64,000 nt of DNA from Penicillus capitatus (Eukaryota; Plantae; Chlorophyta). A program made the position numbers and the translations under genes. Of the stretch, positions 2,772 through 42,621 are shown in pieces. The stretch lies in the NCBI GenBank assembly GCA_965649825.1, contig OZ287695.1, positions 2,035,288 through 2,099,287 of the forward strand, written 5' to 3'. The notes under the pieces are model-generated. The model did no database searches. It saw nothing but the letters and a program-made list of their open reading frames with translations, and had not been told where the DNA came from. Every line of letters begins with the position of its first letter. Position 1 is the first letter of the stretch.

Positions 2772-2856
2772 GGTACGACACAATTCGCTGGGAGCGTTCT
2801 TTCCTTTCCCTTTAAGACGTTGTTCCTCTACCGTCACTCTCCCTGTGCTCCCCGCC

Positions 2857-17956: not shown

Positions 17957-20003
17957 CTACCAACCGTTCTTATACTTGAAGACGTAGAAGTCAAAATCTT
18001 TGTCGCCGAAAGACTCATGGTCGTCATCCTCATACCCATGGCCGCCATATCCGTGACCAAACCCATGACCAAACTTGTAACCCTGCTCGTGATCGTCGTC
18101 ATCGGCATATGGATTGACGAAAGATTGGGCTCTGTCGAAGACGAGGCGTCCGACCTCTCTTCCCAACACTTGTCCACCGTCGTCATCTGCTTGGACATGA
18201 ATGCCACCGGGGAAACGCGAGAATCCGGATTCGTCGGAGGCATCGGTCCAGGTCTCCCAGCAAAGCACGACATCTGTAGCGGGGACGTATCCAATAGACA
18301 TTGGGCCGGTGTTGGGGACGTCACTGAATCCAGGCAGGACGTCGGATCTGGGCTCGAAGAAAGAGGTACCCTCTTCGGAGAGATAGCACGACGGACCTCT
18401 GTATTTGTCATCGCCAAAGAAAAGGCGCAGAGCTTCGGATCCGGCAGCGCTGAAGGTGGAGTGCCCAGATGTATAGGCAGCGAAGTTAGGCGTGACGAAG
18501 TCTGCTGCCTGGAACGGGCGCCATTCGCTGATATTGGTCAGACCGACGCCCATGTATGGTCCTTGCCATGCGAGACGCGTTCTACAGAGTCACACTTTGA
18601 GATCTGCCACAGTAGAGTGAGATCTGTTCTTACTCTCCTCTGAATTCTCCGCATTGGATGACGGAGACTGGACGGGCGTAGTCGAAAGTGACCTTTGTCC
18701 TCCAGCTGGCGATACCGGCATCGTAGACGGCGTTTCCGACGACGAAGAGCAAGCGAGCTGTCTCCAACTGATCGAGGCCTTCGGCAAGAGCGGCATCTCC
18801 TGCGATCTTCCACAGATGTCCTGGTGGAGCTGTGGTATCTGGACCGTCTGCCCAGTACTCCGCAATAATCTTCAACACATCGCCCAGCGTAGCAGAGATC
18901 CTAGAAAACACGGAGAGTGAGCATCGGGATGAGTATCGTACAATGATGCCGTACTCGAGAATCTCGCGGAACTGGCGTTCGAATTCTGCACTTCCGGCAG
19001 GAGGCGGTGGCGGCAACAGTTCGTCTCCCGTCGTCTCATCGCCATCTTCGAGCGCAAACGTCGTGAAACGACCTGCCCACGGGAAGGCGAATTCCTGCGG
19101 CGTGCATTCAGTCGTTCCAAACTGCTCGAACGTTTCTGGAATGCAGAGTGGCTGCCATCTGCCAATGTCGACGATCTGGTTGTCGCAGTCCGTAATTCCG
19201 GCGAGTGTCTGAGGCACATTCAGAGGAGTGTAGCCCGTTGGGTCAACATCGCCTGGTCTCAATGTCCCGTTCGGTTCAAAACCGTCCTCTGTAATCTGTT
19301 CGAGCAAAGCGTCATACAAGCGACTTCTCTAGGCGATAGCGACTTGCCTGGTCGACGACGCGCTGACAGGCGACGGCACCGGCGACGATTTCAGCTTGGC
19401 GCTTGCTCAATTTGAACAAGAATTTTTCCAGCCGTTTAGGCGGCAGATGCAAAGCGAACTCGATCAGAGGAACGAGGTCGTCGATGGTCATGCCCGAGAA
19501 GGCTTCGTACTGTTCGAAGACCAAGGGGAAAGTATCGAAGTCTTCGAAGAGTGCCTTGACCGCCCAGAATCCGGCGCCGTCCATAGTATTGGTCACCGAA
19601 TCCTCGTCGCTCTTCCATGGCAACTTGAACGGATTACCCGTTGTCGAACTGAATCCTGTAAAGACATCTAGAAAAGGCCTACTAACGCGCGAGGATCCTC
19701 ACGTTTAGTGGTGAGCGCAGCTGCCTCGAAGAGACATGTTCCTGCGAGTCCGCATACGCGACCGGCACCAGGTGGCGTAATAGCGCCGAGGTTGAACATG
19801 ATTTGGAGTTGCGCTACGATGGACCATGCGAAGGGGCGATTATCCGCATCGTCGACGGGGCCTTCGGCAGGGATGTTCTCGATAAAGTCCGAAGCCGTTG
19901 TGCATTGCGTTTTACAGACATCGCGCGAAAACTGAACACAGCGACCGACGCCCGAACACAAGAGCACGGCGACAAAGAGAAGCAAATGCTTCGTCGGCAA
20001 CAT
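17957..20003 (-). CDS. Vanadium-dependent haloperoxidase-like protein, copy 1 (secreted, 5 exons, His/Gly/acidic C-tail)
   Basis: Signal peptide; IIAEYWADGP; WRTKVTFDYARP (K..RP); FAAYTSGHSTFS; SRFPGGIH. These are the PAP2/haloperoxidase motifs. Confidence 0.88.
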
Positions 20004-21679
20004 TTGACGCCTGTTAGATAACGTTCGTGAAACGGTGCGACGCGATATGGTCGAACGTTGGTACGGGGATGTTAAGGTCCAATACCCAAGCAGCAGTGAA
20101 AAGTATGGAGAGATAGCTGGAGAGCGCCTATCGGTTTGCCTTTATACCTCAAGGCAAAGCAGGGACGCGTCCTCACAGAACCGCAGAGGCAATCCGAACC
20201 ACTCGTTGGTTTGGCGTATCTTCCAGGGAATTGTGGTCCGCGTGATGTTCGCAAATAGCAACCGCATCCAGGAGTCAAAAGACTAAACGGGTCAGTTGCC
20301 AAGCTCACCCTCGAAACGGCGACTGCAACGGTTAGGCGCGCGCCCCCGTTCTCCGGTGCGTGTTTAACGAATGCTTCAGGTGGATAGCTCCTTTTCGGAT
20401 AACAGTTCGCGGAAATGAACGAAAAAAGCGAATCGACGGGTATAGTCGGTTAGCATTCATGAAAAACATTCGATCGATATGAGCATAGACTGAAAACAAG
20501 AGAAATACACAAGGCTTCGATCCTAACAGTCCTACGTCTGATCTAGATTATTATCTATCGGATATGAGCTCTGTATGTTACTTTCATGCCAAGGCGTATT
20601 GAACAAGACGGCGCGCGTGGACGATATTGCGAGCCGGTGCTTCATCTTGGACCGATCCTCTGGTTTCGGCAAACTGAGCAGCTCCCTTGACTGCTCTTGT
20701 TGCTGCCTCGTTGCAGTACTTTAGATGCTGGTTTGGGTATTGGCGATCTGTCTCTGTCTGATCGATGTCATGACTAAGGTAAGTAGGTCATCGAGTTACT
20801 CGGCAAACCAACTCCGACATCACAACCAAACGACTGAGCGCCAATTCGGCCGAGGCGGCAGCATGGTCTTCGCCGCAGGCTATGCACGCTTCTGTTTCCA
20901 TTCGCTCGGCGCCGATGCCGAGAACGGTAAACCGTAGCTCTCTCTTCCCAAGCAGCACAATGCGAATGTGGCCTTCGACGGAAGCGCACGGTCGTTCTTC
21001 TGCGCACCGCTGCGTTGTTGGACCGCCTAAGCGTTTTGAACGCCGTCATTGTGCTCGTCCATCTCCTTACGGTCGACACGGCAGGTAAGTGCATTGCCAG
21101 CAGCGAGGTGGTACACTTGCGTCGACTCCATCCAACACGCCACTAAGCGCATTCGGCCCGCTTTAACGGCGATAGCGCAGCAACGGCGCAAACACAGAAC
21201 ATAGATTCTCAGCATCATAAATGCGAATTGCAGAACATGCTTGTCGAGCCTATAGGCAGTACAGCGATCTTTTCAGCAAGTAAGCAAGCAAAGGGGCTCC
21301 TCATTTTCTATCGTTATCTCCTCCTACCACCATCCCACGTGTCAGGAACAAAAAAGATCGGTGCTAGTGACAGTATTGGAAAGAAAGATTTCTTGCGAAA
21401 GCGCTTGGCATGGACACAGTGGTGCCTCCTTTGAGTACGTCTCTGCGACTGTTGACTCTTAGAGATTGGACATTGTCTAGCGACCGTGCATTGAGTTAAA
21501 CAAAGAAATAAATAATACACAACCAACCAACCAACTGGCGGCCATTCTTATAAGAATCGATCGATTTTCTTCAAATTGGACCATTCATTCATCAACGACG
21601 CTCTGTTACTTCCGTGCGGTCTTATCAGCATCTCGGCTGGATTGTTGAGGTGGTGATCGAAAGAATAGAGGATCCGTTT

Positions 21680-23046
21680 TCAGACGAGAGCAGTTTGTGC
21701 GTGGGCAAAGGGACAATGGCCAAAGGACGCGCTCAAGATGCGATAGAGGCCCTCTGGATTGTCGGTATGCACCCAATGACCGGCATTCTTTAACAGATGC
21801 ACTCGGTGACCTAGAACAGCCCATCACGTCACATCACACAGAAAGAAGGTGGAATGGGCTTCACTGACCCAATGTCTCGATCTGGTCTGCTAGCTGATCT
21901 GTCCATTGGAAATGGCTGTGCTCTGCACGGACAAAATCGATTTCGAGTCCTTCTGGCGGCGTGTAGAGTAGCGGCCACAGAGAGGTCGTTTCGTAGGATC
22001 TGTAGAGTTCTTCGATTCCTTCGAGATCAAAGGCCCACGTGAATCCCGTCCCTTCTTGTCTCAAATTGGTCGTCATCCAATTGGCGATCGATGAACTGAA
22101 GCCGTGGGATGTTAGATATCGAATCAGGCTTGCTCGGCTAAGAATCGGCAGCGGCATATTCTGAAGGGTTTTGATCAGGTCAAACGGACGATCTTGTTGC
22201 GATGTCTGCATCCAGGAGGCCTCACCCGGCAAAGTATCGAGCACCCATACCTGTCCAAACACTCCATATCCTTGCAATGGACGCCGTAGCGGACGGAGGT
22301 ATACCTGTACAGGTCGAGGGAGTCTCTGGCCGAACTGGTGTGCCATAGACATCACGACTTTTCCACCAAAAGAATGGCCGATGAGAACGCGGGGAAAGAG
22401 TTTTAAGTAATTCAACAGCTGCAGGATATCTCTGGCGGCCGATTCCACTGAGTGCGAGCCAACGTCGGCGATCCGTGGACATTGAGAGTCTCCGTGGCAG
22501 CGCAGATCGACCAGTACTGCTTGCCAAGAAGGATGTCTCTATGTCTCACACATTTCCACGATGCCGATCACACTTTGATGTCGCTGTACTTCGAGAATGC
22601 GTCTGGCAAATGCATGGAGGTTCTTCTTGGATCCCAAAATGCCATGAACCAGGACAATGGTTGGCGGTGTGGATGATACGACATCGCAATGCCGTACCAA
22701 TGCTCCTTGAAGGACTTCAAACCCCTAGAGCGACCGCTAGGCACAGATCTCCATCAGGAAGTGTTCGACTAGGCGAGGCTGCGTTGGAAAGGCGTGAGAT
22801 GAAGGCGAGTACAGTGGCAGATGCGCTGGAACGACAGATGATTTTAACAAGGTCGACACGTTATCGACCGACGCTGGCTCGATAGAAGCACAACGAATGG
22901 GCGTCCTTTTCTATCAGTACACGAAAACACGTTTGACCCGCCTCGGATGACGGGAGCATCACGGAAAAGCGTTTCTGAGGCTTGGAAAACGGAACAGTGA
23001 GAGGAAAGCCTCGAGATAGGCAACGATTCGAAGAGGTGAAGTGCAT
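21680..23046 (-). CDS. Alpha/beta hydrolase (ABHD11-like)
   Basis: LVHGILGSKKN, nucleophile motif IGHSFGGK, VWVLD and NAGHWVHTDNPEG. Confidence 0.87.
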
Positions 23047-23130
23047 TGCTGACAATCAAATTTGCGATGGAATACAGACAGACGATCGATATCATGCATC
23101 AAGGGTATTAAGATGGCCATAACGGCATCA

Positions 23131-25122
23131 TCAGAGGAAGATCGGTTCTCGGCTGCGAGGCGCAGGACGCCGCGGTCGGAGGTTGTTCTGCCGATCGTCG
23201 TAGAGGAAAACCTGTCGTCCTGTGCCCGTTTCGCCAAGGACGGGATCGACGTGTCCAGGACTCGGGGACTCGCGTGCCACCTGTTGGGTGAAACGCGTGG
23301 CGGCCGAGTCTGAACGGGATGTGTGTGATCTTGCCTTGCTGCTTGGACGCGTGTCTTTCTCCGCGATCGAATGGATTTTTCTCAGCTCTGCGGCGTTGAG
23401 CCCTGGGCCCAACGGAAAACGCGAATGCGGCGTCGCTTGTCTTCTGATGGACCCGGTCACAGAAACGCGTCCTTGTGTGGGAGACACGTCGCTGGCGGTC
23501 TCTTTGTGTGTTGGAATCGTGGCGCGGTCGCAACTCAGGCACCTGCGCGAGTACAAACACCCCTTGTCGCAGTACTTGGCGTGTATTTGTACGTAAAGCG
23601 CGTCGATAGGGCTGGCTGAGGATGTGGGGTTTGTCGATGACTGTCGTCTCGAGCGGCCATTCGTTCGTCGTTTCGGACTTCGTTTATCTCTTCGCGGATG
23701 AGTTGTCGAATCTCGTCGAGGGACGGTCGAGCTGCGAGCTCCGCTTTCAGTTCCTCAACGTCGCCGGCGGCGTATTCTGCAACCACGACGTGAGATGCTC
23801 CGCGAGATATTCCCACGCGAACCGTGTTTCGTCGCCGAGGTGAGGCTACTGAGAGCGGTGCTCATGGCCGTCTCGGTGCGCGCCTCCTGCGCTTTTCTGG
23901 CAGCCTCGTTTGTTTCCAACCACCTCTCGATCTTTCGAATGGCATTCTTCGTAGCCTCAACGCTGCACATGTCACATCACACACCTTAAGTATAAAGCCC
24001 GCAAAATAGAGTCTTTACCTATCTGCTTGGCAACGTGAGAGGTTATCAAAGCTCTGCTGCAAGAGGTCCACTCTCGAGTCCATTGTGGAGAACGTATAGT
24101 AATCGGCGTCTCTTGCCGTTGCCAGATTCCGCAGTGCCGAGAGCTCTCCTGTACACCAGCTTTCCCACCTCTCTTTCTCTTTCTACGCTAAACGCGATTC
24201 CTTTGGTGGACAGAGAGGTCAGGACGATGCCTCGATGTGGGTCAGTTTTTCGTCGAAGAGCACTTCCATCACGCGCATTCTCTCCTCCATGTCATCGAGG
24301 CGCCTCTGCCAACGCTCCTGCCTCTCATGCCATCTTGGACAAGAACAGATTTTGTCGCCAAATTGCATCGACGTGACGCCTACATTTCTTCGAAACCGGG
24401 AGCTTCTGTCACGGGCGCCGTCTTTTGTGAACTGTCCCCTTGTGTACACGTCTCTACTGAGGCCGTTCGTTCCGTTTCTGGCCCGTTTTCGATTTCGTCC
24501 TCGTCAGGCTGATCCAGGGGCTCCTCGTTTTCGGCGGATATGGTTGACGCAGAGTGAGGGATAGCCGTTTCGGTTATGTGCTGCGTTCGGATGGCATCTA
24601 GCTTGTAATCCAGCCGTAGCTCCTCGAGCTTAACGTTCCAATGACGTGACTGTTCCCTTAACGCCACTTCCAAACGATCGATGCGTTCCAGCACTTCGGC
24701 TTGAACAAAAGGCGAGAGTTTCGAATGCTTGAGCTCAGCGAGCTGCTCTTCGGTTGCTCGCAATCTTTCGAGTTTCGATTTCATCTCCTCGTAAGTCACC
24801 TCCTGTGACTGAACCTTTGAAAAACAGGCACCACGATAGAAACAGGCCATACGAGAAAGCACAATGCCGCACTCTGTGATTCAATGCCTCTGTCGTTTCG
24901 GCCTGTTTTCGTAGACGCTTCTGGATCATCTCCAGCGATACCTGCATGGACACTGGCGCTAAAGTACTGCCCAGTGTGTAGGCGGGCTACCTGAAGTGGC
25001 GTCTGAATGATAAGAGATGCCGACAGCGATCGCATGTATTCTCCTTCTTCGTCCAGTTGCGCCTCGTCCTTTCGTTGCACGACGGCCGCATCGCATTCGA
25101 CTGCCTCTTCTCCTCCATCCAT
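23131..25122 (-). CDS. Hypothetical coiled-coil protein (multi-exon)
   Basis: Chain of same-strand ORFs with heptad-like Glu/Lys/Arg-rich segments (EEMKSKLERLRATEEQLAELK; VEELKAELAARPSLDEIRQLIREE). No family recognised. Confidence 0.55.
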
Positions 25123-25354
25123 TGTCTCTCCAGCAGAAATACTCTACGCTATCGCTGCGCCTCTAGATAGGAAGACCATGGAGAAGAGAGCAATTTCGCT
25201 CCAGCGAAACGGGTCGCCGAAGCGTTAATCCCGAGGAGATGCGCCATACTTTACGTCCCTGACGCGAACACAACGCCCGGACCCGATTTCGGGTTTGGTC
25301 AACGCCGACGCGGGGTCTTAAGTGACGGACGGTGTGTCAGAAGTCAGCAGACGG

Positions 25355-27656
25355 ATGCATGCGGCAAAGACTCTGGAACTCGTTCGCAACGATGTGCTCC
25401 AGACAGCAGCTACACGTCGGGGGACACTGGTCGTCTTTCCCTCCAGTGCTCACAAGCAGCAGAAGATCGGCACTGGCGATTTGAGTGGCGTCGTTCAGTG
25501 CTTCTCTGTCAAAGGCCAAGACATCAAGACCTCATTCAAATCACTCCCGACACGCCAGTCCATCACCACTGTTGCTCTCGGTCACGGAACCGCGCAGCGC
25601 GATCGAATGTTCTTCGCCGAAGACGCCGTTGTGCGTGGGATGACCAAAAAAGGAAAAGAATTCTTTCGGTTTGATACAAATTTGACCGAGAGTATCAGTG
25701 GCCTCTTCGTACAGGACACACTCCTCGCCGTTATGGGAGAGTACGTCTGCGTCGTTTTCGAAGACCACAGAGAAAAGAGTTTCTACATGTCACCCGATCG
25801 ACTCAATGCCTTCGATGCCTGGACGCACGAAGGAAAGCTCGCCATTGCTCTTGCCTGTCAAGACAGAAGGATTCGGATTCTGGAAGGGAGTAACGTCGTG
25901 CATCAGATTGCCCTCCAAGGCGTGGCGACGTGCGTTGTGCATGTGCCAGAATCGCATGATCCGCTGTGCCGCTATCCCGAAGCGCGTGAGCTTCTCTATG
26001 GAACGGAGAATGGAATCGTGGGGCAGCTACTGCTTGACAGCGCGGGCTTGCATGAGGGATTTGCTGTGGGCAATCCTGAAGGGCACAGTTGTGTGACGGC
26101 CATCTATGCGGGCATTGATTTCACACTGGACGGTTTGAACGATATCGCTGTGGGCAGAGACGATGGGCGGATCGAGATTTACTCCGTGGATGAAACGGGC
26201 GTGCCGTACAGCGTCTTTGAAGTTCAGCTGCCCAACCGAATCAATACTCTGGCTGGAGGGTGCATTACCTCCCCTTACGTCCAAGACCTCATTGCACAAA
26301 CATACGCCGGCAGAGTCATTGCTTATACCAAGAATGCCGACCGATGGTTGACCGATCCTGCACGAGGCTCGCGGATATCCGGCGAACAGCGCCAGGAAAA
26401 CACCGAAAGGCTGGAATTCCTGGAGACCAGAATCCATTCGATGAAGACGCAGGTCGGTGCTCTGGCCCAGCAGCTCAAACAGAAAAAGCACGTCGTGCGT
26501 CATGTTCTCTCGTTTGACGTTTTCTTGCTTTGTAGGGAACAGCTTGGCTTCTTCCTGGATGCGTCTCTGGATATGACGATGGACATCAAGCACCGTTGTC
26601 GATTGGACGCCAGTCAGAATTGCTTTGTTCTCACGATCGAATCCGAGAAGCCCATCTTCTGCATCGGAGTGTGCTGCGACGTCGAGATTGAACTGATGTC
26701 GCCTATCAATAGTGTGGCGATCATGAGTGTATCTCCCCCGGATGCCGAGCACGGATATCCAGTGCTGGCTACTTTTCGCTGCCAAGAATCTGCAAATCGA
26801 TTAGATGTGCGCTTTCGTGCCTGCGAAGGACGACCTGGATGCATGACCTGTTTTGTTCTTCCAAAGACCAGTACAAAACTCGCCGTTTTGTTAAGACATC
26901 GAATTCTACCCCTCTGTCTCCACGAATGCATACCAGAAGCGTCACCAGAGAAGGGATCGCTCATGAGAATTCGTGGAGAATTTACGGACGAAGAGCTGTG
27001 TCTATGGCTGGCAGCTGCTTTGCCAGATTTTCCAAAACGCTGGCAGTCGGATGGACTTCTTCTCTTTCGCAACACTCAGTCCAACCAGATCATGCGCTTC
27101 GGAAAACTTGAAAACGGCGCCGCCGCCGCCGAAATCGAGTGTCCAGATATCTGTGCGCTCAACGTCCTTCGAGAGACACTCTTGCACGAGGCCTCAAAGC
27201 GGAATCATACACTGAACGTGGAATTGAAGATCGACGTGGACGGTGTTCGGCATTCTCTGGAATGTTTGTGGAGCGAGATTGAGACATTCAGAGACATCGA
27301 CGCAAGAGCATCCCTTGGCAAAGCACTTGCCGAGATCCAACAGCAGGTCGAGCGATCATCGCATGTTCTGAAACAACGTTCTCCAACTCATGATGCGTCT
27401 GTCGCTGCAGGACGAGAACGAGATGCCTTTGCTCGATGAAGACATGGAAGATACACTACAAAGCGTCGCCGTAAATGAAGAGCTCTTACAGCAGAAAGAA
27501 ATGCAGATGGACGGCACTGCCGTTTCGATCTGCCTCCTACTCGATCACTACTCAAAGCTCACCGGGACGAACAAACCGCAGACAAAGCTAACCGACCTAA
27601 AAACGAGACTGCGAACAGGCGATGCTGTTTTTCAAGAACTGTTAGATGTGTTGTGA
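25355..27656 (+). CDS. BBS7: Bardet-Biedl syndrome 7 protein (BBSome subunit)
   Basis: QKIGTGDLSGVVQCF, VRGMTKKGKEFFRFDTNLTESI, LACQDRRIRIL and TFRCQESANRL match remembered BBS7 motifs over about 700 aa. Confidence 0.92.
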
Positions 27657-27792
27657 ATGCATCTGACAGCGCCATCTGAAATGGCGCCCATCCATTTCTA
27701 TGACGGTTTGCATTGTCCTGCAGTGTTGATTGCTTTACTGCAACGTTTCGTCGTTCATCGAGTCCTCCCGACACGTACCGGAGTTGTCAAAG

Positions 27793-29746: not shown

Positions 29747-30247
29747 GAAGCGTGCAGTCGTGTCGTCACGTCCCGTTCAATTATAAACGTCTTGTTCGGC
29801 ATTCAATTTCAACCGATCCTCAGATGTGCGCCGCCGGCGGCGTGCCTCTCTACCTCTATCGGGGCAACACACGTCATTTGATCTCCTTTTTGGAACATGG
29901 AGGGAGGGGTGCGATTGTCTGCGTACAGCGGAACGATGGCGAGTGTTGTATACAAGCACTTCCCAAATTGGACACACACATCTCTGCGTTCACAACAACG
30001 ACGAATCAACGGTATGGCACAGAAGAATGACATACGATGGCAACAGTTCATGCTCGACGCAGCCAAAACTTGAAAGAGATTCTTCACTTAGACACACAAG
30101 CATGGCACCGCCCGCCCACGCACCCACCTGACCGCATAGCCGTATGGACACTTGGGCAAAGGGGGAGAGAGACCACTCTGCTGCAGGGCACAACGAGTGG
30201 AGGACGGATGCCCTTGTTGATCTTACACGCATTAAGAAGAAATGAGG

Positions 30248-33002
30248 TCATGTATGTTTCAATAAGTCTGCACAACGGGGGCAGTGATAGGTACGTCCAC
30301 CATCGCCCGTGGCGTAATCTTTAAAGGTACCGAGAAACGGCCGTCGATCACAGGCAAAGTGGATCCACCTTTCGCAGTGATCGCAGCAGATCCAATCGGT
30401 ACCGGACTCGTCGTTCGATCCACACAGCCAACATCCATCCCCCGTCAGATCTTTTGGATGCACCTGGCTGCAGATCGCATTTTCTGAGCAAAAGAGTGAG
30501 AAATGCACCATCTCATATTCGCAGAGGTATGTCTGATAGTGACGTTTGAGAGCATTCCCCACTCCCGTCATTCGATGGTTGGCTGTCCAATTACGCATCT
30601 TTGGGAAGACCTGTCCTTTCCAGTTGATACCATTCCCGACACGAAATCCTCCCCGCGAGACAACCTCCTTGTAGAGATTGAAGAGATCCAGCTGACAGCC
30701 ATTGAGCACTGCCTCAGGGAATTTCTCTCGATCCAACGGTTTGCCTCGATGCGCCTAGAATACCACCATTTCGCCGATGGCCATATTTTTATCGAACCTC
30801 TAAAAACGCAACGAGGTCATCGTAGAACTCGGTCTCTGTGCAACGATTCAGTAAAGGCCGTGTGGAATGATAATCCTACATCCGAGATCTCGAGCGATGA
30901 TTCGATCAGTCAGTCAATCGTTTAGGTATTACCATGGCAGCGATATCCGGCATCTGGACGGCCATAGGTTCGTGGCTCGTTTTGGAACTTACATCGTATT
31001 CAGCATCCATTTCAATATCATAGTCCGATTCATTATCGAGGCCTGCAGTCCACAAATCTCTTTTATCTAAGCACTCCGCATGAGCATGTGTGTTGTTGCT
31101 ACTCTCCACAAAATCGACATCGACATCTCCATTGTTCTGCCCATAAGCATTTCCCTGATTTCTTGGTCGAACGGACCGAGGACGCTCGGGGTATCCAGCA
31201 TCACGGCGATGGCCCACTGGCATGAGCGGCTGATTCTGCATCCCTGACTGACTCCATGATGTTGGATAGGCAGAGAAGAATTGAGAGGGCTACCTGTAAC
31301 GATCGTATTGTATCTGAGCGTATCGCTCGATCTGAAATGCACGAGAGCGCTGCCGCCAACACCGGCAATGCCAAAGGAGACCAGTCCACGGTAGGCATTG
31401 TCCTGACATAGACCGCGCAGAACATGAACAGCCCAGACAGACGTCACCACTAATGCATCCACCACTGGCGTCCCACCTGCCACCGATGCAGAGCTCCTGA
31501 AAAATGCCACGTCGATACAGCGTAGATAGGTGCAGCTGGGACCGAGCGGTCGTGGGAGGAAAGGTTGGCGGCGGCAGGCGAAATTGCAGACAGAGGGAGT
31601 CGACAGCCAGTGTCTGACGCAAAGCGTGTTGAACGAGGAGATGATTGGACAGGACCGATGGAGGACCCCCTGCAACGACACCTGTCGATTGCTACCTCTG
31701 CATCTGTGCCTACCCAGAACGACGACTGTTTTGACGCCACTGGCACATTTGATGTGACAGCGCACAGCCGCACATTCAGATGAGATGTTTGAAGGAACGT
31801 GATCGCAACGGTCGACATCCATCACCTGGGAGCTGTCGTTTTCAGAGAGGGTCCTGTCATGGATAGTGACGGCGGACCTTAAGAGAACGCATTTCGGTAA
31901 GAAGCAGTGCCCGCAATGCTTCGCCCAGCAGACTCAGACGTGTGGCGTCGATGACCGATGGGCCGCCACAGATCAGTAAACGCACTTCGGCCTTGGGAGC
32001 CAACAGCAGGACGTTCTCCCAACCTGTGATACCTTGTCCGTGCAATCTGTCAAATCTATCAGTCTATTCGACCTGGCACGTTGGGAACATCGTCTTCCAG
32101 AAATTCAATTTCAGGTATGGGCTCCAACGGGACGGTACTGCACTGAGGGAGATCAGGTACCTTGGAGGAAAACAGACTGGGCACCAACTGAAGGGACACA
32201 TGAGGGCGCTCTTTCGCAATATCTAGCACCACATCTCCATCGACTTCGGTATCAAAACGCACGAGCAGAGGATTACTGTCACAGAAGAGCTGAACGGAAC
32301 GGGAAGCCATGGCAAATGCTTCGGAGAACGTCACTGTTTCGTTTCGAAGCATGGCAAAGAAACAATGGGCAAACTGTGAAGCCACGGCGGAGCACATGTA
32401 TCCTCCACGTGGCCAGTAGACCAGATTCTCGCAGCACTGAAACGATCTCAGCGACGCCACTAGACACAGAAAGTCGCTCTCCATCGTGTCCGCTGTCGGT
32501 GTTGAGAGTTCCAGATGCCTTGGGTCGGTGTCAAGGGAGCGTCGATGTACAGTGTTTCGATTTCTGCGCTTTGAAAGACATGGACTAAGGTGGGCACGTC
32601 ATTCCTTCCAGAGGGTTGCCCGTCGGCGTTCAACTCTGCAAAGCTCAAAGGGTTCTGCTGAGCGTTGAGAAGATCCTGGTATGGACTGAAGCCTCCCGTT
32701 AAGTACACGATATGTGGCTTGACCTCCGCCAGAAGCCTCTTGAGATCTTCCAGTGATGGATGCGGCACGACGGTGACCTAATAGCGTTCGTATGGATTGG
32801 AAGACAGGGAAGGTGTGCGTTTCTCTACGTGGACGGCCGTCCCCGGGACATGGCGCATCTCATCTGCGACTTCCGACACACAGAAACGCTCCGGCGTCGG
32901 CGGGCAACACTCGACAAACATCACACGGCGTTCCATGCTTGCAACGCACGAACGACCGTCAAACGCACGACGTCGGTAGTGGTAACGTTCACATCTTCTC
33001 AT
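30248..33002 (-). CDS. ARID + PHD-finger protein (plant ARID4-like)
   Basis: LDLFNLYKEVVSRGGF..INWKGQVFPKMRNWT..GNALKRHYQTYL, followed by C-terminal CWLCG..WICCDHCERWIHFACD..YHCPRC. Confidence 0.9.
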
Positions 33003-33062
33003 TTCGTTCTTATCTCAAAAAACGGAACGGAACGGAACTTCTTCGTAAAACGCGCAAGAAAA

Positions 33063-34610
33063 TTAGACAGCGTCCTCGTCGATGTCTGGCATGAGCGATG
33101 CAGCCTCGAGATCGGCCGAAGGCTCAGGGATATCAGATATGCCGTTTAATGACCGATCCAACGCGGCCTGTTCAACGAATGTCGACTCGGGTAGTCCAGT
33201 GCCTTCGGTGCAACGTTGTCGGTATGCGGCACGGGCAAGCTCTTCGATCTTCTGCGCCAGTGAAGGGTCTTCTTTCAAACGGGCGACGGCTTTTGCTCGA
33301 CCATGTCCAATACGCTCATCGTCAAAGCTATAGTGACTGCCGGTCTGTCGGACGATGTCCATCATCATGGCACCGTCAATCACACTGCTGACGCGACAGA
33401 TGCCTTCGCCGTAGATGAGATCGAGCTCCGTTGTGCGATACGGTGGGGCCACTTTGTTCTTGATCGTTTTGAGCTTCAGTTTGTGACCGATGATGCGGCC
33501 ATCGCTATCTTCGATTTTCTTTCCCTGACGGACGTCCAGAATCTGCGAGGCGTTGTGTGGCAATGCCCGTCCTCCTGGTCGCACTTCGGGATTCGTAAAG
33601 GGCATCGCATTCACTTTCATCCGCAGCTGATTGATAAAGATCGCTGTGCACATACTCTCCGGATCCTTGTCCGATCCCAGCACACCATTCACCAGTTTTA
33701 TCCCACGACTCATCAAACGCGCTTGGGTAGCGATCTAGGACAGAGGCGTCAGGAGAGGTTGAGAAGGAATGTCATGAACTCTGGCATCTTCGACACTGGC
33801 AATGAGCTCGTCGCTTGGTGTCATGGCAGCAACACTGTCGACGCAGATTCCGCCGACGACACGGGAACGAATAGCCGTCACCATCACATCGAAAGCTTGA
33901 TCTCCGCTGTTCGGCGACACCAGAACGAGGTTATTGGGATTGACGCCAATTTTCTGAAGCCAGATCATCGCATTGCATCGGCGCCGTCGCAGACCGGCTC
34001 TTACCAGAGCGTACTTACGATGAAAGGCATTTTCCATGTCAAAGTAGTAGACGTCGTTGTCTACCTTTTGGATCTCTGAGATGAGATGCCACGCCAACGT
34101 TGTCTTTCCACTTCCTTCGGGACCAAACATCTAGTCACATCATTTCTCACACTTTCTCGCACGCTTCGATATGGTAACCTCGATAATGCGACCCTTAGGT
34201 ATGCCGCCGCCCAGCATGAAATCCAATGTCAAGATACCCGTCGACCACAGAGGTCTGCACGATCACTCTCGACGAAAAGAGTGACAAGAAAGACGTTGAC
34301 ATGTCTTGTGGGGCGTCGTTCAGCTTCATCACGGTCCCGCTGCCGTATTCCTTGTTGATCGCTTCGGTAAGCTTCTTTCGTGCGTCCGATTTCTGAAGGC
34401 GACGTTTCGATTGGCGCCGATGCGAAAGAGATCGACCTTTCGACGCTTCTCGACGTCGTCATCGATGTCCGGACCCTTTTTCTTTGGCCGACCGACGGCC
34501 GCAGATGCAGCGGTCTTTGTCGTTCGGACCGCAATTCCCGCGCGTTTCGTAATGAGCGACGTTCCACAGAATGCTCGGAGTCCCGCAGAGCGACGAACGC
34601 AGTGTCGCAT
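33063..34610 (-). CDS. recA: Organelle-targeted RecA recombinase (divergent)
   Basis: STGILTLDFMLGGGIPKGRIIE, GPEGSGKTT, VDSVAAM, IFINQLRMK and KNKVAPPYR, with an Arg-rich transit peptide from ATG 34610. Confidence 0.95.
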
Positions 34611-34612
34611 GG

Positions 34613-35735
34613 CTACAGCGATGTCCTTGTCAAGAGATGCGATACAATGTCCATAGCCTTATCCTAACCACGCACACACAAACACATCCTGTATCGTCGC
34701 AGATCGATGTCAAACGCACCTGCTGACGCAGATAGTACGTCGCCAGAAGAATGCGCTGTTGGTGGGGGGAGAGATCGCCGTGAGCGCCGAGATGTTCAAT
34801 GCGATGACGCCGGGCCTCGTAGAGGACCATGGCAGCCGCAACGGAGATATTGAACGACTCGACGCATCCATCCATCGGGATCACCGCACAGAGATCTGCA
34901 TTTTCCATCACAGCAGGGGACACACCATCGCCTTCGTTTCCGAATACCACGGCGGTTGGGATCGTCCAATCGATATTCTGCAACGTGTCGTCGGCGTGGG
35001 AGGCAAGAGATGCGAATCGACCTGGATCGCAACGGCGTCGGAGGATGCAGCCGTGGCGATGATCTGATAGCCCATGGAACGGAGGACGGGGAAACATTCC
35101 TCAGCGCTTTGCCACGTCTTGCGATACAGCCATTTGTCTGCTCCGGCGCTGCAGCGTTCAGAGAACTTGCGATATCGATTCCTAAACATCGAACGATTCG
35201 ACCGTGGCGTCGTGGATGGAACCTAAGTGCCAAGGTTCGATGGTGTGTATGGCTCCACATCCCATTCCTCAAAGACAAGATTTTACAGAGAGTGAAGATC
35301 GGTGCTCCACGCACCGTCTGCTGTGCGCATCACTGCTGCAACATTGCCACTGTTGATCAGCCCTGACGACGGATCTCGTGACAAGACGGGGACAGAGACT
35401 TACCGTCAATGACGGGCAGCAGGTTGAAGGTTCTCTGTGCGACGACCTGTGATGTGTCTCTCGTAAGCGATCAGATCTCATCGAACGCGAAAGGGCACTT
35501 TTTGCAGCATCTCCTTGCGCCGTTGCGTCAGGAATGGATCCATTAGCCGCAAGATCGTCGCGCTGTCCACTGTGCGCGCATCGATTGGAAAGGCGTCAGA
35601 GAAGGGGAAGGTCTGCATCTCGCTAGAGAGGGGGGCGCATTCCAAGGTTCTTCGCGAGGCACGGCAGGGATGTATGGGCCATCGGTCATGCGTGATGCCA
35701 CCGACGGCGAATCGGGCCACAGCATGCAAGGACAT
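34613..35735 (-). CDS. SpoU/TrmH-family tRNA/rRNA methyltransferase
   Basis: LGNISAVMRTAD-type motif, AVVFGNEGDGVS and IPMDGCVESFNISVAAAMVLYE. The last 56-nt intron leads to DKAMDIVSHLLTRTSL* with stop at 34613-34615. An upstream start at 35897 is possible. Confidence 0.9.
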
Positions 35736-35963
35736 GATGTTTGTTTGTTTGTTCGTCGACGCGGGCCGTGTGTTCGTTCGCCATGTTCTATTGCCTCGAT
35801 TGAGTCGTTTTTTATCCGTTGGTGGGCGATCTTTGGTGAAAGCTGTGAAGCGTTTTTTTCGCGTGGGCGTCGCGCTTTCTTTCCTCGTCGTCGCCATTCT
35901 GAAACGATCTTCAAACGCGTCTGAGTTTTTGACGCCATACCCGACATTGAATTCAGGTTTTCA

Positions 35964-36971
35964 ATGGGGCGCAAACGCGCACAGATAGACGTAACGCTAA
36001 AGCTCCTCCTCGACTGTGGAGACCTGAGACCTGGAAATGGTGTCCTGCAAGTGTCGACACGTGAACAAACGCGCAGCGCAGATTTGAGTCGAGACGGAAT
36101 CATCGTTTTCGAAGGTAAGGAAGATGTGGTGGGTGGAGGCGAGATGGGCCGCTGGTAACACGTGGCCTCGTGGCCGTCCGTTTTGTGCCTCCGATGATGT
36201 GTCCGATGCGTGCGTGAGACGATGTTTTTCAGGTGAAAGGCATCGGTCATTATCCAGCTTCGCTGTGGCAGCCATCCGTTCCTGTGGCGCAGTGGGGCGC
36301 AAAACAGCGAATGGCTGGCAGGTTGTGAATTACCAAGGACGGTATGTCGCTGCTTTCGGTTTTCGCGCCTGCTGTACAATGTGGTGTTGTGAGACAGACC
36401 ATTGGAGCAGTACCGTGCAGAATTTCTAGAAAAAGAGAGTCAGGCTTCGGATTCCGGTGGCGAAGTGGAACACGTGATGCACAAAACCGGTGTCAAAAAG
36501 CGACGCATGACATGGCGTCTTCCGCCAGAAGAGACGCTGAAGCAGGAGCTGGCAGCATCGGACAGAGAAGAAACGGCGCGCAGTTCGGATTCGGGTGGAA
36601 GCCGAGTGAGTACTCCCGAAATGACGACGACGGTGGCGACGATGGTGATTCAGCGTCCCTCCTGCGCAAAGGGATCTAAGCAGAAACGCGTGCGCCCGTC
36701 GCCAACGTGGTTCGACGCTTTGCCTGTGCGTCGCGAGATGACGATGATGGAGAAAGACGCTCTGACGCCGCGTTTGTTGCCCGCTGTGAGGAAGCTACCG
36801 TGTCCAGATGCGCTCTGTGGCATGAAACTCGAGAAAACGGCCCCAATAGTGAAGCGACGCACGGCTGAAGAAGAAGATGAGGAAGATGACGCCAATCAGA
36901 GGCGTGCTGCGAATATGTGGCTGAAGAAAGCTTTGAATAAGCGCCACAGGGAAGAGTGTGGGATGTCATAA
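35964..36971 (+). CDS. RAMA-domain protein with long disordered C-terminus (3 exons)
   Basis: Spliced TLKLLLDCGDLRPGNGVLQ..ADLSRDGIIVFEGERHRSLSSFA..NGWQVVNYQGRPLEQYRAEFL resembles the RAMA domain of MPND. The first intron is 36115-36232. Confidence 0.72.
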
Positions 36972-37552
36972 TCGCTCATCGCCCGACCACCTTCATGAAC
37001 TTGCTCTCTCGCGTTTGCAACGCCACACAACGAAGCTCTTGCTTTTGTTCTTACTGTGTACCTGTTTACGGGACTTGATCGATCGAGGTTCGGGTCTCTT
37101 TTTTGCGGCGGCGGTGGCGGCGGCTTGGAGGAGGTTCTCACTCCGATATAGTAATGGATGGATCTGTGGCGTGCGGGAATGACGGACACTCTTGTATTAA
37201 GTACTAAGCTGACCTACTGAGAGTCTAGCATCAATAAATGATGGCATGTAGCACCTGGGAGTCCCACACACATGGGTCACTCTTTTTCTCTGTTTTTTGT
37301 GTCCGGCCGTGACGGTGAAACCATCACCTGCGGCTTCAGACAGCGTGCTTCCCTTACTCTAATTCTTTCAAATGTAATGCCATGAAGCCAAAGATGTTGA
37401 AGGTGCCAGAGGTGCGCAGATGTGAACGAGTGTGTCGGGATCCGGACGTGTTTAATGAACCATTTCGTTTTCTTACTTAAATCGGAGGCGCCCACATTGT
37501 TCAAAGCCTCAACAACAAACGCATATTGAAGGGAGATACATGTGAAGGCTCT

Positions 37553-39402
37553 TTAGCCAGAAGCAGACAATCTCAAACGATTGGCTTTATTGAAAACGGC
37601 AGCACCAATGCGCCGACCGAGATTCTGTCCGGCTACGTCATCTGCCTTGATGTGGATGCCGCCGTAGAGACGCGACTGTCCGGATTGTCCAGACGCCGCG
37701 CTAAACCTTTGCCAGCAGAGAATCACATCCTCTGCCGGAACGTAACCTTCCGTATTTAACCCCCTGTTGGGCACATTCGATATGCCAGGAATGGCATCCG
37801 AACGCGGTTCAAAAAGAGACTCCCCTTCTGGAATGCGATCACAGGATGGTCCGCGATAGATATCGTCACCGAAGAATAGTTGTAGTGCCTCGGCTGCCGC
37901 AGCACTGAATGTCGAATGGCCAGAAGTGTATGCAGCGAAGGCAGGAGTGACAAACGACGCCGCTTGATACGGTCGCCACTCGCTTATATTGACGTCACCG
38001 ACGCCTCTATACGGACCCATCCACGCGCGTCGAATCTGTCCTCTGTATGCGCCGCATTGGATCATTTGTAGAGGACGTCCGAAATCGAAGGACGTCTTCG
38101 TTTGCCAGCTTGCGATGCCAGCATCGTAGACGGCGTTACCTACGATAAAAAGCAGACGTGCTGTCTCGGCTGGACTCAGCTGTTCGCTTCGTGCAGCGTC
38201 GGCAGCGATTTTCCAAAAATGTCCGGCCGGTTGTGTCGTATCCGGTCCGTCGGCCCAGTACTCGGCGATGATTTTCAGGCCGTCATCGAGTTCGCCCGAA
38301 ATCCTGCACAGCACGAAAGACAGTGAACACCACACGTCGTCCGGTGAAGTGACGCACTGGAGGACTTGTTCCCACTGTTCGCGAAAATCTGTCGTTCCTG
38401 CCATCGGCGGCGCCTCGGTCAGGTCGAATCCCGTGCTTTCGTTGCCGGGCCGCAAAGCATAGGGCGTGTACCGTCCAGCCCACGGATAAAGGAACTTCTG
38501 CGGGATGCAGCTTCGCGTGCCGAAGTCTGCCGCACCCATCGGAACGCACAGCGGTTGCCAGCGATTGATATCGGCAATCTCATTGTCACAGTCTGTAATA
38601 CCGGCCAGTAGCTGCGCCTTATTCATCGTTTGATAAGAGGCAGGATTAGGCTTGTCTCCCAAATCCCCTCGCGCTGTAAAACCGTCCGCCGTATACTGCA
38701 GCAAAGACGTGGGACTCAGATGTCAGAGTGATCGGAACGCACCTTGTCGATGACACATTGACAGACAGCAACGCCCAATAGTATGGCAGATTCGCGAGTG
38801 ATGGGACCGCTCAGAACTTGACGGGCGACCGTAGCTGCCGGAAGCCCAGCAACGAATTCCATATCTGAAATGAGATCGGTTATGTTTTTGCCAGAGAAAT
38901 CTTGGTACTGCTGGTTGACGCGGTCGAACGATGGTCGATCGCCGAACAACGAACGCACAGCCCAGAAGGCTGCGCCGTCCATGGCGTGGGCCATCGTCTC
39001 GGCTGTTGGGTTTGAGAACTTGAATGCGCATTCAGTGTCCGACCGATAATCTGCAAACAGCGTTCCCACGTCACGAGAGGCGTCGGTGTTTACTCTCTTA
39101 CCTTGTCGGTTGAGGGCCGCAGCCTCATAGAGAGCGCTGCCGACGATGGCACTGATTCGACCGGCCGCTGGAGGCGAAATGATGTCGAAATTCAGCTTTA
39201 GCTGGATGAGGGTCACGATGGCCCATGCATAGGCACGGTTGTCGCCGTCAGCAACGGGTCCAGTCGTCACAGGAAGCTTAGGGATAAAGTCTCCTTGCGT
39301 ACAGGTGCTTGCGCAAGAAGGCGGGAGAAAAAGATCTGCATGAACGCAGAGGACGGGGGAGAAAACGAGAACGAACGCGAGCAGGGTGGAGGACGAAAAC
39401 AT
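37553..39402 (-). CDS. Vanadium-dependent haloperoxidase-like protein, copy 2 (secreted, 4 exons)
   Basis: Signal peptide; IIAEYWADGP; WQTKTSFDFGRP; FAAYTSGHSTFS; SRLYGGIH. Confidence 0.9.
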
Positions 39403-40641
39403 GGTACGCGTCGAGACGTCGATCAGTGGCACTTTGAACGGAGTGAGGGCCCCGTAAAAAACGTGCCCTGGCGCAAGGCTGTCTGTCTTGTAGCAACAAT
39501 GCGTCGCGTCCAAAAACGGCCACAACGTGGCAACACGTGTTGTGTGATGGGACACCTGTCACTGTCATTACCACCGTAAGCTTTCCAAGCGCTCTCCTTT
39601 TCAGCCATAAAATTATGCGTTGTGTGGAGTGTTCAGACGGGGTATCTATGTATCACATGTGGGCCTGGACAGAGTTCTCTGTCAGAAAGATCATCTCTGT
39701 GGGCAGGCAGCCAAAGCTTGGAGTTACCTCGGTAATGGATACTAGGCAATTGGAAACGGTGATTGGTGATGAGGTCATGCGTGCGTGCTGTCGAAAGGTA
39801 AAAGCCATACAGGTGACCAAGAAACGGCATCATCTCGACTTCCTGTCTATATGCTTACTGTCGCGTTCTTCATCTGTGCTTCGTGAATGAAATGACCCAT
39901 GCAAGGCAGGAGAGAACACATCGGTCGATTCTCTCTAATATGTCATGTACGAAATGAATGCCTCTCTGTGCTCTCCCTTGTTTGCAGACAGAAGTGCCGA
40001 AGGCGAGCCATGGCGGCTTCAAAAGATGTTAACCCAGTAATGGGTCGCTGTCTCATGATCCCTGCCTCTTCCAACTGTCTCTGGTATTGCTGTTGTGAGT
40101 CAAATGCTTTGTTGGATGCTATTGAATCTTCAGAAACACGGAAATCGACCTCCGGTCAAAAAGACTTCCGTAAACGACCGAACCGTTCAACGGCACTACG
40201 GGAAGATTTTTTGGATCCGCGGATTGATAAACGACAATGCGGCGCACAACAAAACAGACAAGCGCGATAGGCTACAGCTCCGGAAGGATGGACCACGATA
40301 CACGCATTCGACCCATATCGCTTCTTTTCTGTCGCTTATGATTCGTCGCCGTACAGAACGCAGAGCCGTACTGAAAAGAGCTCGTTGATCGCAGACGGGA
40401 AAAGCGTTACGCCGTTCACCTTTGTAACATCCCCCGCTTTTCTTATCTTCCTGCGAAGCGAGCGATGCAAGCTGCATAGACACAACCGCTAAGAAAACAA
40501 ATACCAGTGGACTGACAGTTCACATCATCATCGACGTCGTCAGCGAACCTCGGATTAACTGAGGTTGGACATTCGTGATAAGGCCACAAGGATCTTTGAC
40601 TCTTCTGTTCTGTGCAATTTTGCTGCTGTCGACGTTTAAAG

Positions 40642-42621
40642 ATGTTTCGAACGAGGCTTTTAGTTGTTGCTCTGCTCTTCGGAGCGAACTATGTGCAGGG
40701 CACTGTGTATTCTTCACCGTCTTGCCAGCAACAATGCACCAGCGAGGCAGATTTCGTCCATGACCTGCCGGACGAAACGGGACCGGTAGAACAGGGCGAC
40801 AACCGAGCTTATGCCTGGTCCATCGTTGCGCTGATTCAACTGAAGAGCAATATTAAAGACATCTCGCCTCCTGCCGCTGCCCGCGTTTGCGGTCTCGTCG
40901 GTACCTGTCTTTACGAGGCAGCTGCGCTCTATAATCCCAGTAAGCTCATCGCCAGACGCCCTCGCGTTTTGCGAAACGTGTCTCAGGATATAAATCTTCC
41001 GTTAGTCCGTTGAAACGGTATTCTTTTTGGCGAGATGGGACAGGACATAACAAACATATCATCCATGCCGTAAAGCGTGCAGGATTCTTGGGTGTCGATT
41101 CCTTTCTGCGTGATGGGTCGGGAGAAGACGAACAGCTCATCCACGCTATGGACGGTGCAGGATTCTGGGCTGTCCGATCTCTCTTTGGTGAAAGAGCGAG
41201 CTTTGATCAAGTCCTATCTCAATACAGAAGCTTTTCGGGTTTGGACATCGAATCTCTGATTCCCATCATTGAGGCAGCCGTACAGCATCCTCGTATCCAC
41301 GGTAAACTCATACCTGACGACCGAACCGCCGGGATCGTTGATGGTGCTTTGGCCTGTCAGCGTGTCATCGAGAAGGTATTGACTGTAAAGTATGTGGGTC
41401 AGTCATTTTAGACGTCTTCTTTGTAGTACACCAAGGATGGCTTCAATCCCGACGGGACACATCGTGACGACCAGCCGCCAGTCGTCGACTACAGACCTTA
41501 TAACCTTCCGCAACGCCTCGCAGGGATTACGGACTGCGATAACGAGATCAAGAATCCGAGCACCTGGCAGCCGTTATGCATTCCGAGTCAACCCGAGGAT
41601 TTTGGCACGACGGCCTGCACGCCACAGAGTTTTCTTGCTCCCTTCGCGGGACGCTACGAACCTTTTGCACTTCAAGCCGGCGACGAGACAAGTGGCGATG
41701 CGCTGTTGGGACCTCCTCCCGTTGCCGGGACGGCAGAATTCAGAAAGCAATGGGAAGAAGTTCTCGAGTAAGCGACCTTCTGGAAAAGGAGCTTGATGAG
41801 GAGATTTCTCCATTGTTTGTTAGATTTTCAGCGAATCTGGACGATGTCGACAAGATCATTGCGGAGTACTGGGCAGATGGTCCGGACTCCACCGCGCCTC
41901 CCGGTCATTTCTTCAAGATCGCCGCCGACGCAGCGTTGAGTGAAAATCTCGACGTCTCGGAAACGGCACGACTGCTCTTCATCGTCGGAAGCGCCGTCTA
42001 CGATGCCGGTATTGCCAGCTGGAGAACGAAGACAACATTTGATCTCATTCGCCCACTACAGATGATCCAGTGCGGAGAGTTTAGGGGACAGTACGTCACA
42101 CTTGCATCTCACTCTTTTTGACTCGTTTGCCTGGTAGGGAGAGGCTTGCGTGGAAAGGACGTTATCAAGGGATCCTCCTCACAAACATAAGCGAATGGCG
42201 TCCTTACCAAGCAACAGATTTCGTAACGCCGCCATTCGCCGCCTATACATCTGGACACTCCACTTTTAGCTCCGCAGCTGCCGAAGCGTTGCGTCTTTTT
42301 TTCGGCGATGATGCGTACAGAGGACCACGCTGTCACAAGACAGCTGAAGGTGCGTCGCTTTTTGAACCTAAATCGAGCAAGATGCCAGGCATCTCGGATG
42401 TCCCGAATTCTGGCCCGATGACACCGGGCTACGTCCCTGCTGACGATGTTGTTTTGTGCTGGGATACCTATACCGCTGCCGCAGACGAGGCAGGGACCTC
42501 GCGACTTCTTGGCGGCATTCATATTCGCGCCGACGATGTGGCTGGACAGATCCTCGGACGCTCTATTGGAAGCGACGTTTTCGACAAGGCTCAAGAACTC
42601 CTCATTCCTTATGGTCTCTAA
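40642..42621 (+). CDS. Vanadium-dependent haloperoxidase-like protein, copy 3 (secreted, 5 exons)
   Basis: Signal peptide; IIAEYWADGP; WRTKTTFDLIRP; PPFAAYTSGHSTFS; SRLLGGIH. Confidence 0.9.
41019..41174 (+). repeat. Degenerate 2 x 78-bp in-frame tandem duplication inside VHPO copy 3
   Basis: 41019-41096 encodes YSFWRDGTGHNKHIIHAVKRAGFLGV; 41097-41174 encodes DSFLRDGSGEDEQLIHAMDGAGFWAV. Confidence 0.85.

Follow-up and report, generated by a model that had tools for sequence, protein, structure and literature searches.

A stretch of 64,000 nucleotides from contig OZ287695.1 of Penicillus capitatus (the window) contains three genes, here named W1, W2 and W3 (Table 1), whose products belong to the vanadium haloperoxidase (VHPO) superfamily and are of the bacterial/fungal type built from two helical bundles. 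The reading of these proteins that is best supported, and that we consider probable, is that they are extracellular, vanadate-dependent halide oxidases of a non-selective kind. The three genes are further members of a small, Bryopsidales-wide putative VHPO subfamily that has already been sighted.

Results

The active site

A previous reading of the window, made from the letters alone (the sequence-only reading), had attributed the complete vanadate/phosphate-binding set to all three proteins, and the motifs W..K......RP, F....SGH and SR...G.H...D are indeed found in three of three; in W1 they read WRTKVTFDYARP, FAAYTSGH and SRFPGGIHVQAD. The ...PPGH signature, which had also been listed as shared, does not extend to W2, where the corresponding residues are ...QPAGH. 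The profile search proposed as a check placed the Pfam domain VCPO_2nd (PF22778) above the cutoff of 27 bits in each gene, with scores on the open reading frame (ORF) pieces of 45.9 (W2), 35.2 (W1) and 34.7 bits (W3). The N-terminal exons gave no Pfam match, and PF21167 (DUF6851) is absent from the domains precomputed for the algal homologues; the structural model nevertheless aligns to NapH1 over its full length. No NCBIfam family matched the VHPO proteins of the window, and database homologues were found down to E = 1e-221, well past what chance could give.

Among 56 homologues, residues K385, R392, P393, S443, H445 and H533 (W2 numbering, used throughout) are invariant and R527, G444, W382 and F438 are nearly so, W382 and F438 each being kept in at least 90%. 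In the phmmer alignment of W2 to the vanadium chloroperoxidase of Curvularia inaequalis (CiVCPO), W382, K385 and R392 correspond to W350, K353 and R360, and F438, S443, G444 and H445 to F397, S402, G403 and H404; the halide-pocket residues equivalent to W350 and F397 of CiVCPO are therefore present, as W382 and F438. W2 was also aligned to esVHPO from Enhygromyxa (9ptr), including its K373, R380 and S427, with R527 and H533 falling on R490 and H496. The esVHPO numbering is taken from PMC12633397; the SEQRES numbering of 9ptr equals the native numbering plus 20, as confirmed on K373, R380, S427, S429, R490 and H496.

Fold and relation to known enzymes

The AlphaFold2 (AF2) model of W2, with a predicted local distance difference test (pLDDT) score of 93.9 and a predicted template modelling score (pTM) of 0.93, suggests a fold of two four-helix bundles. 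Foldseek against the Protein Data Bank (PDB) gave full-length matches to NapH1 (3w36; E = 3e-22, target template modelling score, TMt, 0.76), NapH3, XhnO11, the iodoperoxidase of Zobellia galactanivorans (ZgVIPO) and CiVCPO, with 506-530 aligned columns and TMt of 0.72-0.77 against NapH1, NapH3, XhnO11 and ZgVIPO. The best PDB matches are NapH1, esVHPO, XhnO11 (9l8x) and the non-halogenating NapH3 (8cxl), with a sequence E of 4e-19; of these, esVHPO is secreted, as is predicted for the window proteins. The non-selective VHPOs CiVCPO (1idq) and ZgVIPO (4cit/4usz) match the full-length fold at E = 1e-13 to 5e-18 and, like the window proteins, have a histidine at the acid-base position and no haloamine lysine. 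These two enzymes are fungal and flavobacterial, however, are only 16-20% identical to the window proteins, and lack the CxxxC motif, extra cysteines and 23-residue insertion described below.

The proteins had been assigned to the bacterial type rather than to the classic red and brown algal bromoperoxidases, and the phmmer search of PDB, Foldseek and the CiVCPO alignment agree on this. No red or brown algal bromoperoxidase appeared among the phmmer PDB matches, and in Foldseek the bromoperoxidases of Ascophyllum (1qi9), Corallina (7qvw) and Acaryochloris (5lpc) scored E ~1e-2 over ~230-300 aligned columns. The red/brown algal and cyanobacterial bromoperoxidases have the superfamily active site in common with the window proteins, but are of another architecture and oligomeric type.

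Bacterial proteins with DUF6851 and VCPO_2nd domains, which carry the annotation "vanadium-dependent haloperoxidase", share AEYWADGP..PPGHW, WxPYQ..FVTPPF.EY.SGHSTFSAA and SRLYGGIH with the window proteins and are 30-41% identical to them over most of their length. They differ in three respects: there are 62 residues between SGH and SR..G.H where the algal proteins have 85, the clade-specific cysteines are absent, and the N-terminal domain is matched by PF21167, whereas that of the algal proteins is not.

Phosphatase, selective halogenase or halide oxidase

Given that PAP2 enzymes have these catalytic residues too, the main rival to a halide oxidase is a secreted acid phosphatase, which would use PAP2 histidine-phosphatase chemistry to scavenge phosphate from organic esters and for which vanadate would have no physiological role. 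We think this unlikely. The set K..RP, SGH and SR...G.H...D is common to the class A acid phosphatases (PhoN, PhoC and the E. blattae enzyme), which also have the C-terminal helical bundle; a phosphate intermediate has been trapped in apo-VCPO in a solved structure (3bb0); and the predicted secretion and acidic isoelectric point (pI) would suit an extracellular phosphatase. PAP2 (PF01569) does match the ORF pieces of the window weakly, at 20.2-23.4 bits, but this is under the Pfam cutoff of 27.2. Similarly, Foldseek retrieves phosphatases of the PhoC/PhoN type (E ~1e-4), but these match the C-terminal bundle only, over half the length (query template modelling score, TMq, ~0.25), whereas VHPOs match full-length; the class A enzymes are single bundles of ~230 amino acids (aa), as against two bundles in the 565-613 aa of the window proteins. 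Furthermore, the equivalents of W350 and F397 in the halide pocket are kept family-wide. Together, the two-bundle fold of the model and these two residues favour a haloperoxidase over a phosphatase, without proving it.

A second alternative is that the proteins are site-selective halogenases in the manner of NapH1, Mcl24 or the secreted alkyl-quinolone (AQ) VHPOs, each paralogue acting on one defined metabolite of the alga or one bacterial quorum signal with no release of free hypohalous acid. The top PDB matches in sequence and fold (esVHPO, XhnO11 and NapH1) are of this kind, bacterial secreted AQ-VHPOs are known to act on exogenous signals (PMC11312541), and three paralogues could mean three substrates. 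Site-selective VHPOs, however, are marked by an anionic gate (E327), by burial of the vanadate site and by a Lys-Ser dyad (K329/S429) that holds the haloamine; in non-selective VHPOs the dyad lysine is replaced (PMC12633397). In W2 the positions of K329, S429 and E327 of esVHPO are occupied by G335(P336), H445 and A333, so that the dyad and the gate which define the selective enzymes are both missing from the window proteins. With a histidine at 445, Gly-Pro in place of the haloamine lysine and alanine in place of the gate glutamate, one would expect hypohalous acid to leave the enzyme and not to be handed to one bound substrate; judged by these residues, the window proteins appear configured like the enzymes that release hypohalous acid and not like NapH1. 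It also counts against this alternative that the AEYWADGP motif is near-invariant across the whole subfamily, and identity to the selective enzymes is just 18-22%. We therefore regard selective halogenation as a distant prospect.

Slightly more distant still is the possibility that these are VHPO-fold proteins which do not halogenate at all: an isomerase like NapH3, a structural protein of the wall, or decaying copies. NapH3 ranks high among the structural matches, W3 has a 26-aa in-frame duplication within a bundle helix, and one Bryopsis family member, Bp_06, is without the vanadate histidine (PMC13198595). The vanadate ligands are intact in W1, W2 and W3, however, NapH3 having phenylalanine at the position of H445, and the genes show no frame disruptions and a low ratio of nonsynonymous to synonymous substitution rates (dN/dS, 0.14-0.22).

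Bacterial contamination or chimeric assembly, which might be suspected from the presence of the window on a 687 kb contig of a metagenome assembly (ERZ25074695) and from a family that is mostly bacterial, is already refuted by eleven GT/GC-AG introns, a GC content equal to that of the flanks, the eukaryotic neighbours BBS7, NFACT, DPE2-type GH77 and dual-specificity phosphatase (DSP), an identical arrangement on an independent contig of 1.67 Mb, and the lack of any bacterial sequence above ~41% identity. Since, in addition to these introns, neighbours and base composition, the BBS7 of the window is nearest to that of Caulerpa lentillifera (47% identity) and then to those of Chlamydomonadales (34-37%), it is well supported that W1, W2 and W3 belong to the nuclear genome of a green alga.

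A family of the Bryopsidales

The 1.67 Mb contig belongs to metagenome assembly ERZ26696514 and represents a second genome (loci L001 and L012). Its gene order is a W1 orthologue 5 kb from BBS7, then ARID/PHD, RecA, SpoU, the W2/W3 pair head-to-head, DSP, NFACT and GH77. Comparison of the window (1-64000) with this contig shows long-range synteny at ~80-88% protein identity and a dS of ~0.5, so that two related green algae are represented in public metagenome data. The orthologue pairs are 80-88% identical in protein, with dN/dS of 0.14 for W1 (L012), 0.22 for W2 (L001) and 0.21 for W3 (L001). Since all three have syntenic orthologues and low dN/dS, the paralogues, which are 54-60% identical to one another, predate the split of the two algae and are under purifying selection; the gene duplication that had been claimed is thereby borne out.

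Named relatives come from Caulerpa (five copies), Ostreobium (four) and Bryopsis only, and the nearest being those of Caulerpa and Ostreobium makes a bryopsidalean source most likely. Caulerpa lentillifera g2552-g2554 and g2580-g2581 are 55-65% identical to W2, Ostreobium quekettii CAD7698096, CAD7698095 and others 37-41%, and Bryopsis plumosa Bp_01 (PQ699221) 35-38% over its N-terminal 400 aa. Members of this clade resemble W1-W3 in length, signal peptide, CxxxC motif, full cysteine set, 23-aa insertion and catalytic motifs, have 83-88 residues between SGH and SR..G.H, and likewise occur as tandem paralogues in the Caulerpa, Ostreobium and Bryopsis genomes. W1, W2 and W3 arose by duplications separate from those that gave Caulerpa its five copies, which form a clade of their own (100% bootstrap).

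The sequence of Bp_01 is in the supplement of PMC13198595 (2026), where it was scored as Sec-secreted and extracellular and where B. plumosa transcripts are listed as novel putative vHPOs, "group 2". Bp_01 shares 35-41% identity with members of the clade and 24-28% with bacterial and intermediate-group sequences (see below), and with it in the clade the family is represented in each of the three bryopsidalean suborders. The sequence-only reading had taken the genes for an undescribed system. This cannot be maintained, since the clade is common to Caulerpa, Ostreobium and Bryopsis and a member from B. plumosa has been published as a putative secreted vHPO (PMC13198595). An Ostreobium protein is, further, labelled "VHPO NapH1-like second helical-bundle domain-containing" in UniProt. 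The Ostreobium, Bryopsis and Halimeda genome papers found by search make no mention of the VHPO-like family; in the literature on haloperoxidase with Bryopsidales, Chlorophyta or horizontal gene transfer only PMC13198595 was directly relevant, and no discussion of the evolution of the family was found.

Evolutionary origin

In neighbour-joining trees with bootstrap, the Bryopsidales-type sequences form one clade (100%). Within it W1 and W3 group together at 67-70%, and W2 groups with environmental transcripts at 53-71%. The homologous bacterial family is very large, with members in at least 575 GTDB species of many phyla, cyanobacteria and actinomycetes included, and 4038 matches at E <= 1e-3 were found among 1.84 billion cluster representatives. 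The nearest outgroup of the algal clade is, however, a set of 11 environmental proteins (the intermediate group), the joint clade having 100% bootstrap and the placement of a bacterial sister reaching no more than 29%. The proposal that a bacterial gene had been acquired is thus only partly upheld: the family is rooted in a large bacterial one, but direct donation is not supported, and "acquired from bacteria" holds only at depth.

A ~23-residue insertion between motifs 2 and 3 (85-86 residues against 62) and the cysteine pair C239/C399 are found in both the algal clade and the intermediate group, whereas only Bryopsidales have CxxxC and the other cysteines. Remodelling was stepwise: the insertion and one cysteine pair came first, CxxxC and further cysteines followed, and introns and duplications were last. 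The intermediate-group proteins have signal peptides or signal anchors, and their genes are uninterrupted ORFs on dense, ORFan-rich contigs, of which L003 (ERR14788039) has a GC content of 27%; these contigs look like those of giant viruses or compact protists. The group comprises loci L003, L010 and L011 (proteins P0026-28 and P0217-P0229) and is represented in samples ERR14788039 and JGI 3300075153, and ankyrin and DOT1-like neighbours are present on a 33 kb contig. No named close relative emerged from Pfam for the neighbours in L003 or from the database search for its GH1 gene, and cluster look-ups for the 11 proteins gave no names.

Giant-virus proteins from IMG/VR were considered as donors and rejected, since they score ~100-150 bits to all groups and resemble the algal clade no more closely than bacteria do. 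A first IMG/VR scan gave bacterial-type copies only; a second, with the intermediate-group profile, gave many contigs of giant-virus metagenome-assembled genomes (GVMAGs). The GVMAG bins (many of L099-L138) encode a separate protein family of ~520-1100 aa with the conserved N-terminus MS.RIYDSSQLT.R..EKA.AGSF and a C-terminal VHPO/PAP2-type domain bearing K..RP, SGH and SR..G.H.

Protein features

The N-termini of W1-W3 begin with a brief run of charged residues, after which comes a markedly hydrophobic segment (peak hydropathy over 10 residues, 2.7-3.5), and the CxxxC motifs CKTQC, CASTC and CQQQC are all present, as the sequence-only reading had it. SignalP and DeepLoc calls for a Bryopsis homologue are given in PMC13198595. 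The extra conserved cysteines were likewise recovered: C30, C34, C239, C266, C399, C470 and C512 are kept in at least 96% of the algal clade and in at most 1% of bacterial homologues. The predicted mature proteins are of 59-65 kDa with a pI of 4.3-5.0, and an N-I-S sequon is common to all three.

Two features are lineage-specific when compared with the Caulerpa, Ostreobium and Bryopsis relatives. The first is the C-terminal tail of W1, whose core (NPYA.DDDH...FG.KDFDF..FKY) is kept in the orthologue at L012 (about 2630-2760); a His/Gly/Tyr-rich insert within it, HGFGHGYGGHGY, is found in the window copy only, and possibly serves in binding metal or the wall. The second is the tandem duplication in W3, which doubles the helix bearing DGAGFW, the upstream copy being degenerate (KRAGFLGV); the L001 orthologue has a single copy of the 78-nucleotide (nt) unit. 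This duplication was found by peptide and nucleotide comparison and was missed by Tandem Repeats Finder.

Table 1. Positions within the window of the three VHPO-type genes and their parts
Feature	Position	Strand	Remarks
W1 VHPO-type gene	17957..20003	-	5 exons, 613 aa
W1 exons	20003..19703, 19655..19348, 19295..18955, 18900..18634, 18581..17957	-	
W1 introns	19702..19656, 19347..19296, 18954..18901, 18633..18582	-	second is GC-AG
W1 signal-peptide segment	19938..20003	-	MLPTKHLLLFVAVLLCSGVGRC; maximum 10-aa hydropathy 3.45
W1-specific C-terminal extension	17960..18103	-	~48 aa, acidic, aromatic, His/Gly-rich
W2 VHPO-type gene	37553..39402	-	4 exons, 565 aa
W2 exons	39402..39102, 39050..38743, 38695..38358, 38303..37553	-	
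W2 introns	39101..39051, 38742..38696, 38357..38304	-	
W2 signal-peptide segment	39337..39402	-	MFSSSTLLAFVLVFSPVLCVHA; low-pLDDT N-terminal helix in AF2 model
W2-W3 intergenic region	39403..40641		1239 bp, between divergently transcribed genes
W3 VHPO-type gene	40642..42621	+	5 exons, 592 aa
W3 exons	40642-40939, 40987-41375, 41427-41767, 41824-42090, 42138-42621	+	
W3 introns	40940-40986, 41376-41426, 41768-41823, 42091-42137	+	
W3 signal-peptide segment	40642..40701	+	MFRTRLLVVALLFGANYVQG
W3 in-frame tandem duplication	41031..41186	+	2 x 78 nt, 67% nt identity; exon 2

Gene models and neighbourhood

All three genes are complete, intact and at the positions and on the strands first described. 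Their 11 introns are each of 47-56 nt, ten being GT-AG; the single GC donor, in W1 intron 2, reads CAG|GCAAGT...CAG. Introns 1-3 lie at homologous positions and in the same phases in W1, W2 and W3; W1 and W3 have a fourth intron, which W2 lacks. The splice junctions give gap-free alignments to uninterrupted homologues on contigs of ~2 kb, the size of an mRNA. Three of the 11 introns have a length that is a multiple of three and contain no stop, so prokaryote-style ORF callers translate through them. An alternative model of W3, with a longer first intron and 546 aa, was dropped because exon 2 of the L001 orthologue likewise starts with YKSSV.

The three genes had been described as clustered. 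This is true of W2 and W3, which adjoin head-to-head, but W1 lies 17.5 kb away, beyond unrelated housekeeping genes; no fourth copy or pseudogene was found within the window by tblastn. The W2-W3 intergenic region is presumed to be a promoter region shared by both genes; the head-to-head layout and collinear blocks of 70-80% identity in this region are kept in L001.

The eukaryotic housekeeping genes that neighbour W1-W3 in the window encode a LanC-like protein, an acyl-CoA synthetase, an alpha/beta hydrolase, BBS7, an organellar-type RecA, DSP, NFACT and a DPE2-type GH77 with CBM20. No H2O2 source or biosynthetic gene was found near W1-W3 within the window, the genes there being housekeeping genes only. 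The LanC-like domain (E = 2e-62), in a 568-aa ORF at 2452-4158 (plus strand), is of the eukaryotic LANCL type and unrelated to the VHPO genes. A bacterial-type RecA gene, split by introns, lies at 33063-33716 (minus strand) and is retained in the syntenic contig; it is presumably the organelle-targeted RecA of green algae. Two ORFs, at 50628-52619 (663 aa) and 35543-36379 (278 aa), both on the minus strand, have no Pfam match.

Discussion

A mechanism for W1-W3 as halide oxidases can be proposed from the conserved active site and established VHPO chemistry. The products would be secreted, disulfide-stabilised, acidic glycoproteins of ~59-65 kDa. Orthovanadate would be carried covalently on the motif-3 histidine (H533) and held by K385, R392, S443, G444 and R527, and H2O2 would convert it to a peroxovanadate. 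This would oxidise bromide, iodide and possibly chloride to hypohalous acid, with H445 acting as acid-base and W382 and F438 lining the halide pocket. Outside the cell the acid would halogenate or oxidise whatever lies near, such as phenolics of the wall and of wound plugs, microbial signals and dissolved organic matter, and H2O2 would be consumed as well. As to history, the bryopsidalean ancestor would have acquired a single gene long ago, after which this gene gained spliceosomal introns and extra cysteines and was duplicated before the source alga split from the second sampled relative.

Several points weigh against this reading. PAP2 enzymes and apo-VCPO carry out phosphatase chemistry with identical active-site residues, so that neither vanadate dependence nor halide oxidation can be proved from the sequence; halide preference cannot be predicted either. 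No enzymology was found in the literature for the algal clade or for the bacterial DUF6851 + VCPO_2nd subfamily. Secretion is deduced from the N-terminal sequence and from predictions on the Bryopsis homologue, and the destination may instead be the vacuole or the endoplasmic reticulum.

Circumstantial support for a halide oxidase comes from the detection of headspace tribromomethane in Flabellia, a member of the Bryopsidales (PMC5940206), and from the bromoperoxidase activity reported in Ulva (PMC11915382). VHPO-driven cross-linking of phenolics into the wall in brown algae (PMC8307928), oxidative wound-plug chemistry in siphonous green algae (PMC6278426) and the halogenation of quorum signals by secreted bacterial VHPOs (PMC11312541), taken with the Flabellia observation, make some biological roles plausible.

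A more specific history, which we hold to be doubtful, is that the Bryopsidales did not take the enzymes directly from a bacterium: these would belong to a wider clade of VHPO-like proteins, Cys-bridged and either secreted or membrane-anchored, whose carriers are uncultured compact-genome eukaryotes or giant viruses, one of which was the donor. Siphonous algae, each a single giant cell, would then have put the enzymes to use outside the cell in cross-linking wound plugs and walls by oxidation or halogenation. If this were true, the acquisition would be part of what lets a giant coenocytic cell survive injury.

Green algae have long been reported to have bromoperoxidase activity and to emit halocarbons, and we know of no vanadium haloperoxidase from a green alga that has been characterised. 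W1-W3 and their relatives in Caulerpa, Ostreobium and Bryopsis are defined candidates for such an enzyme, and they document an old, order-wide gene acquisition with stepwise remodelling. A eukaryotic, secreted and probably non-selective VHPO would be of interest to biocatalysis and, given the abundance of Bryopsidales on reefs, would also be relevant to halogen cycling there.

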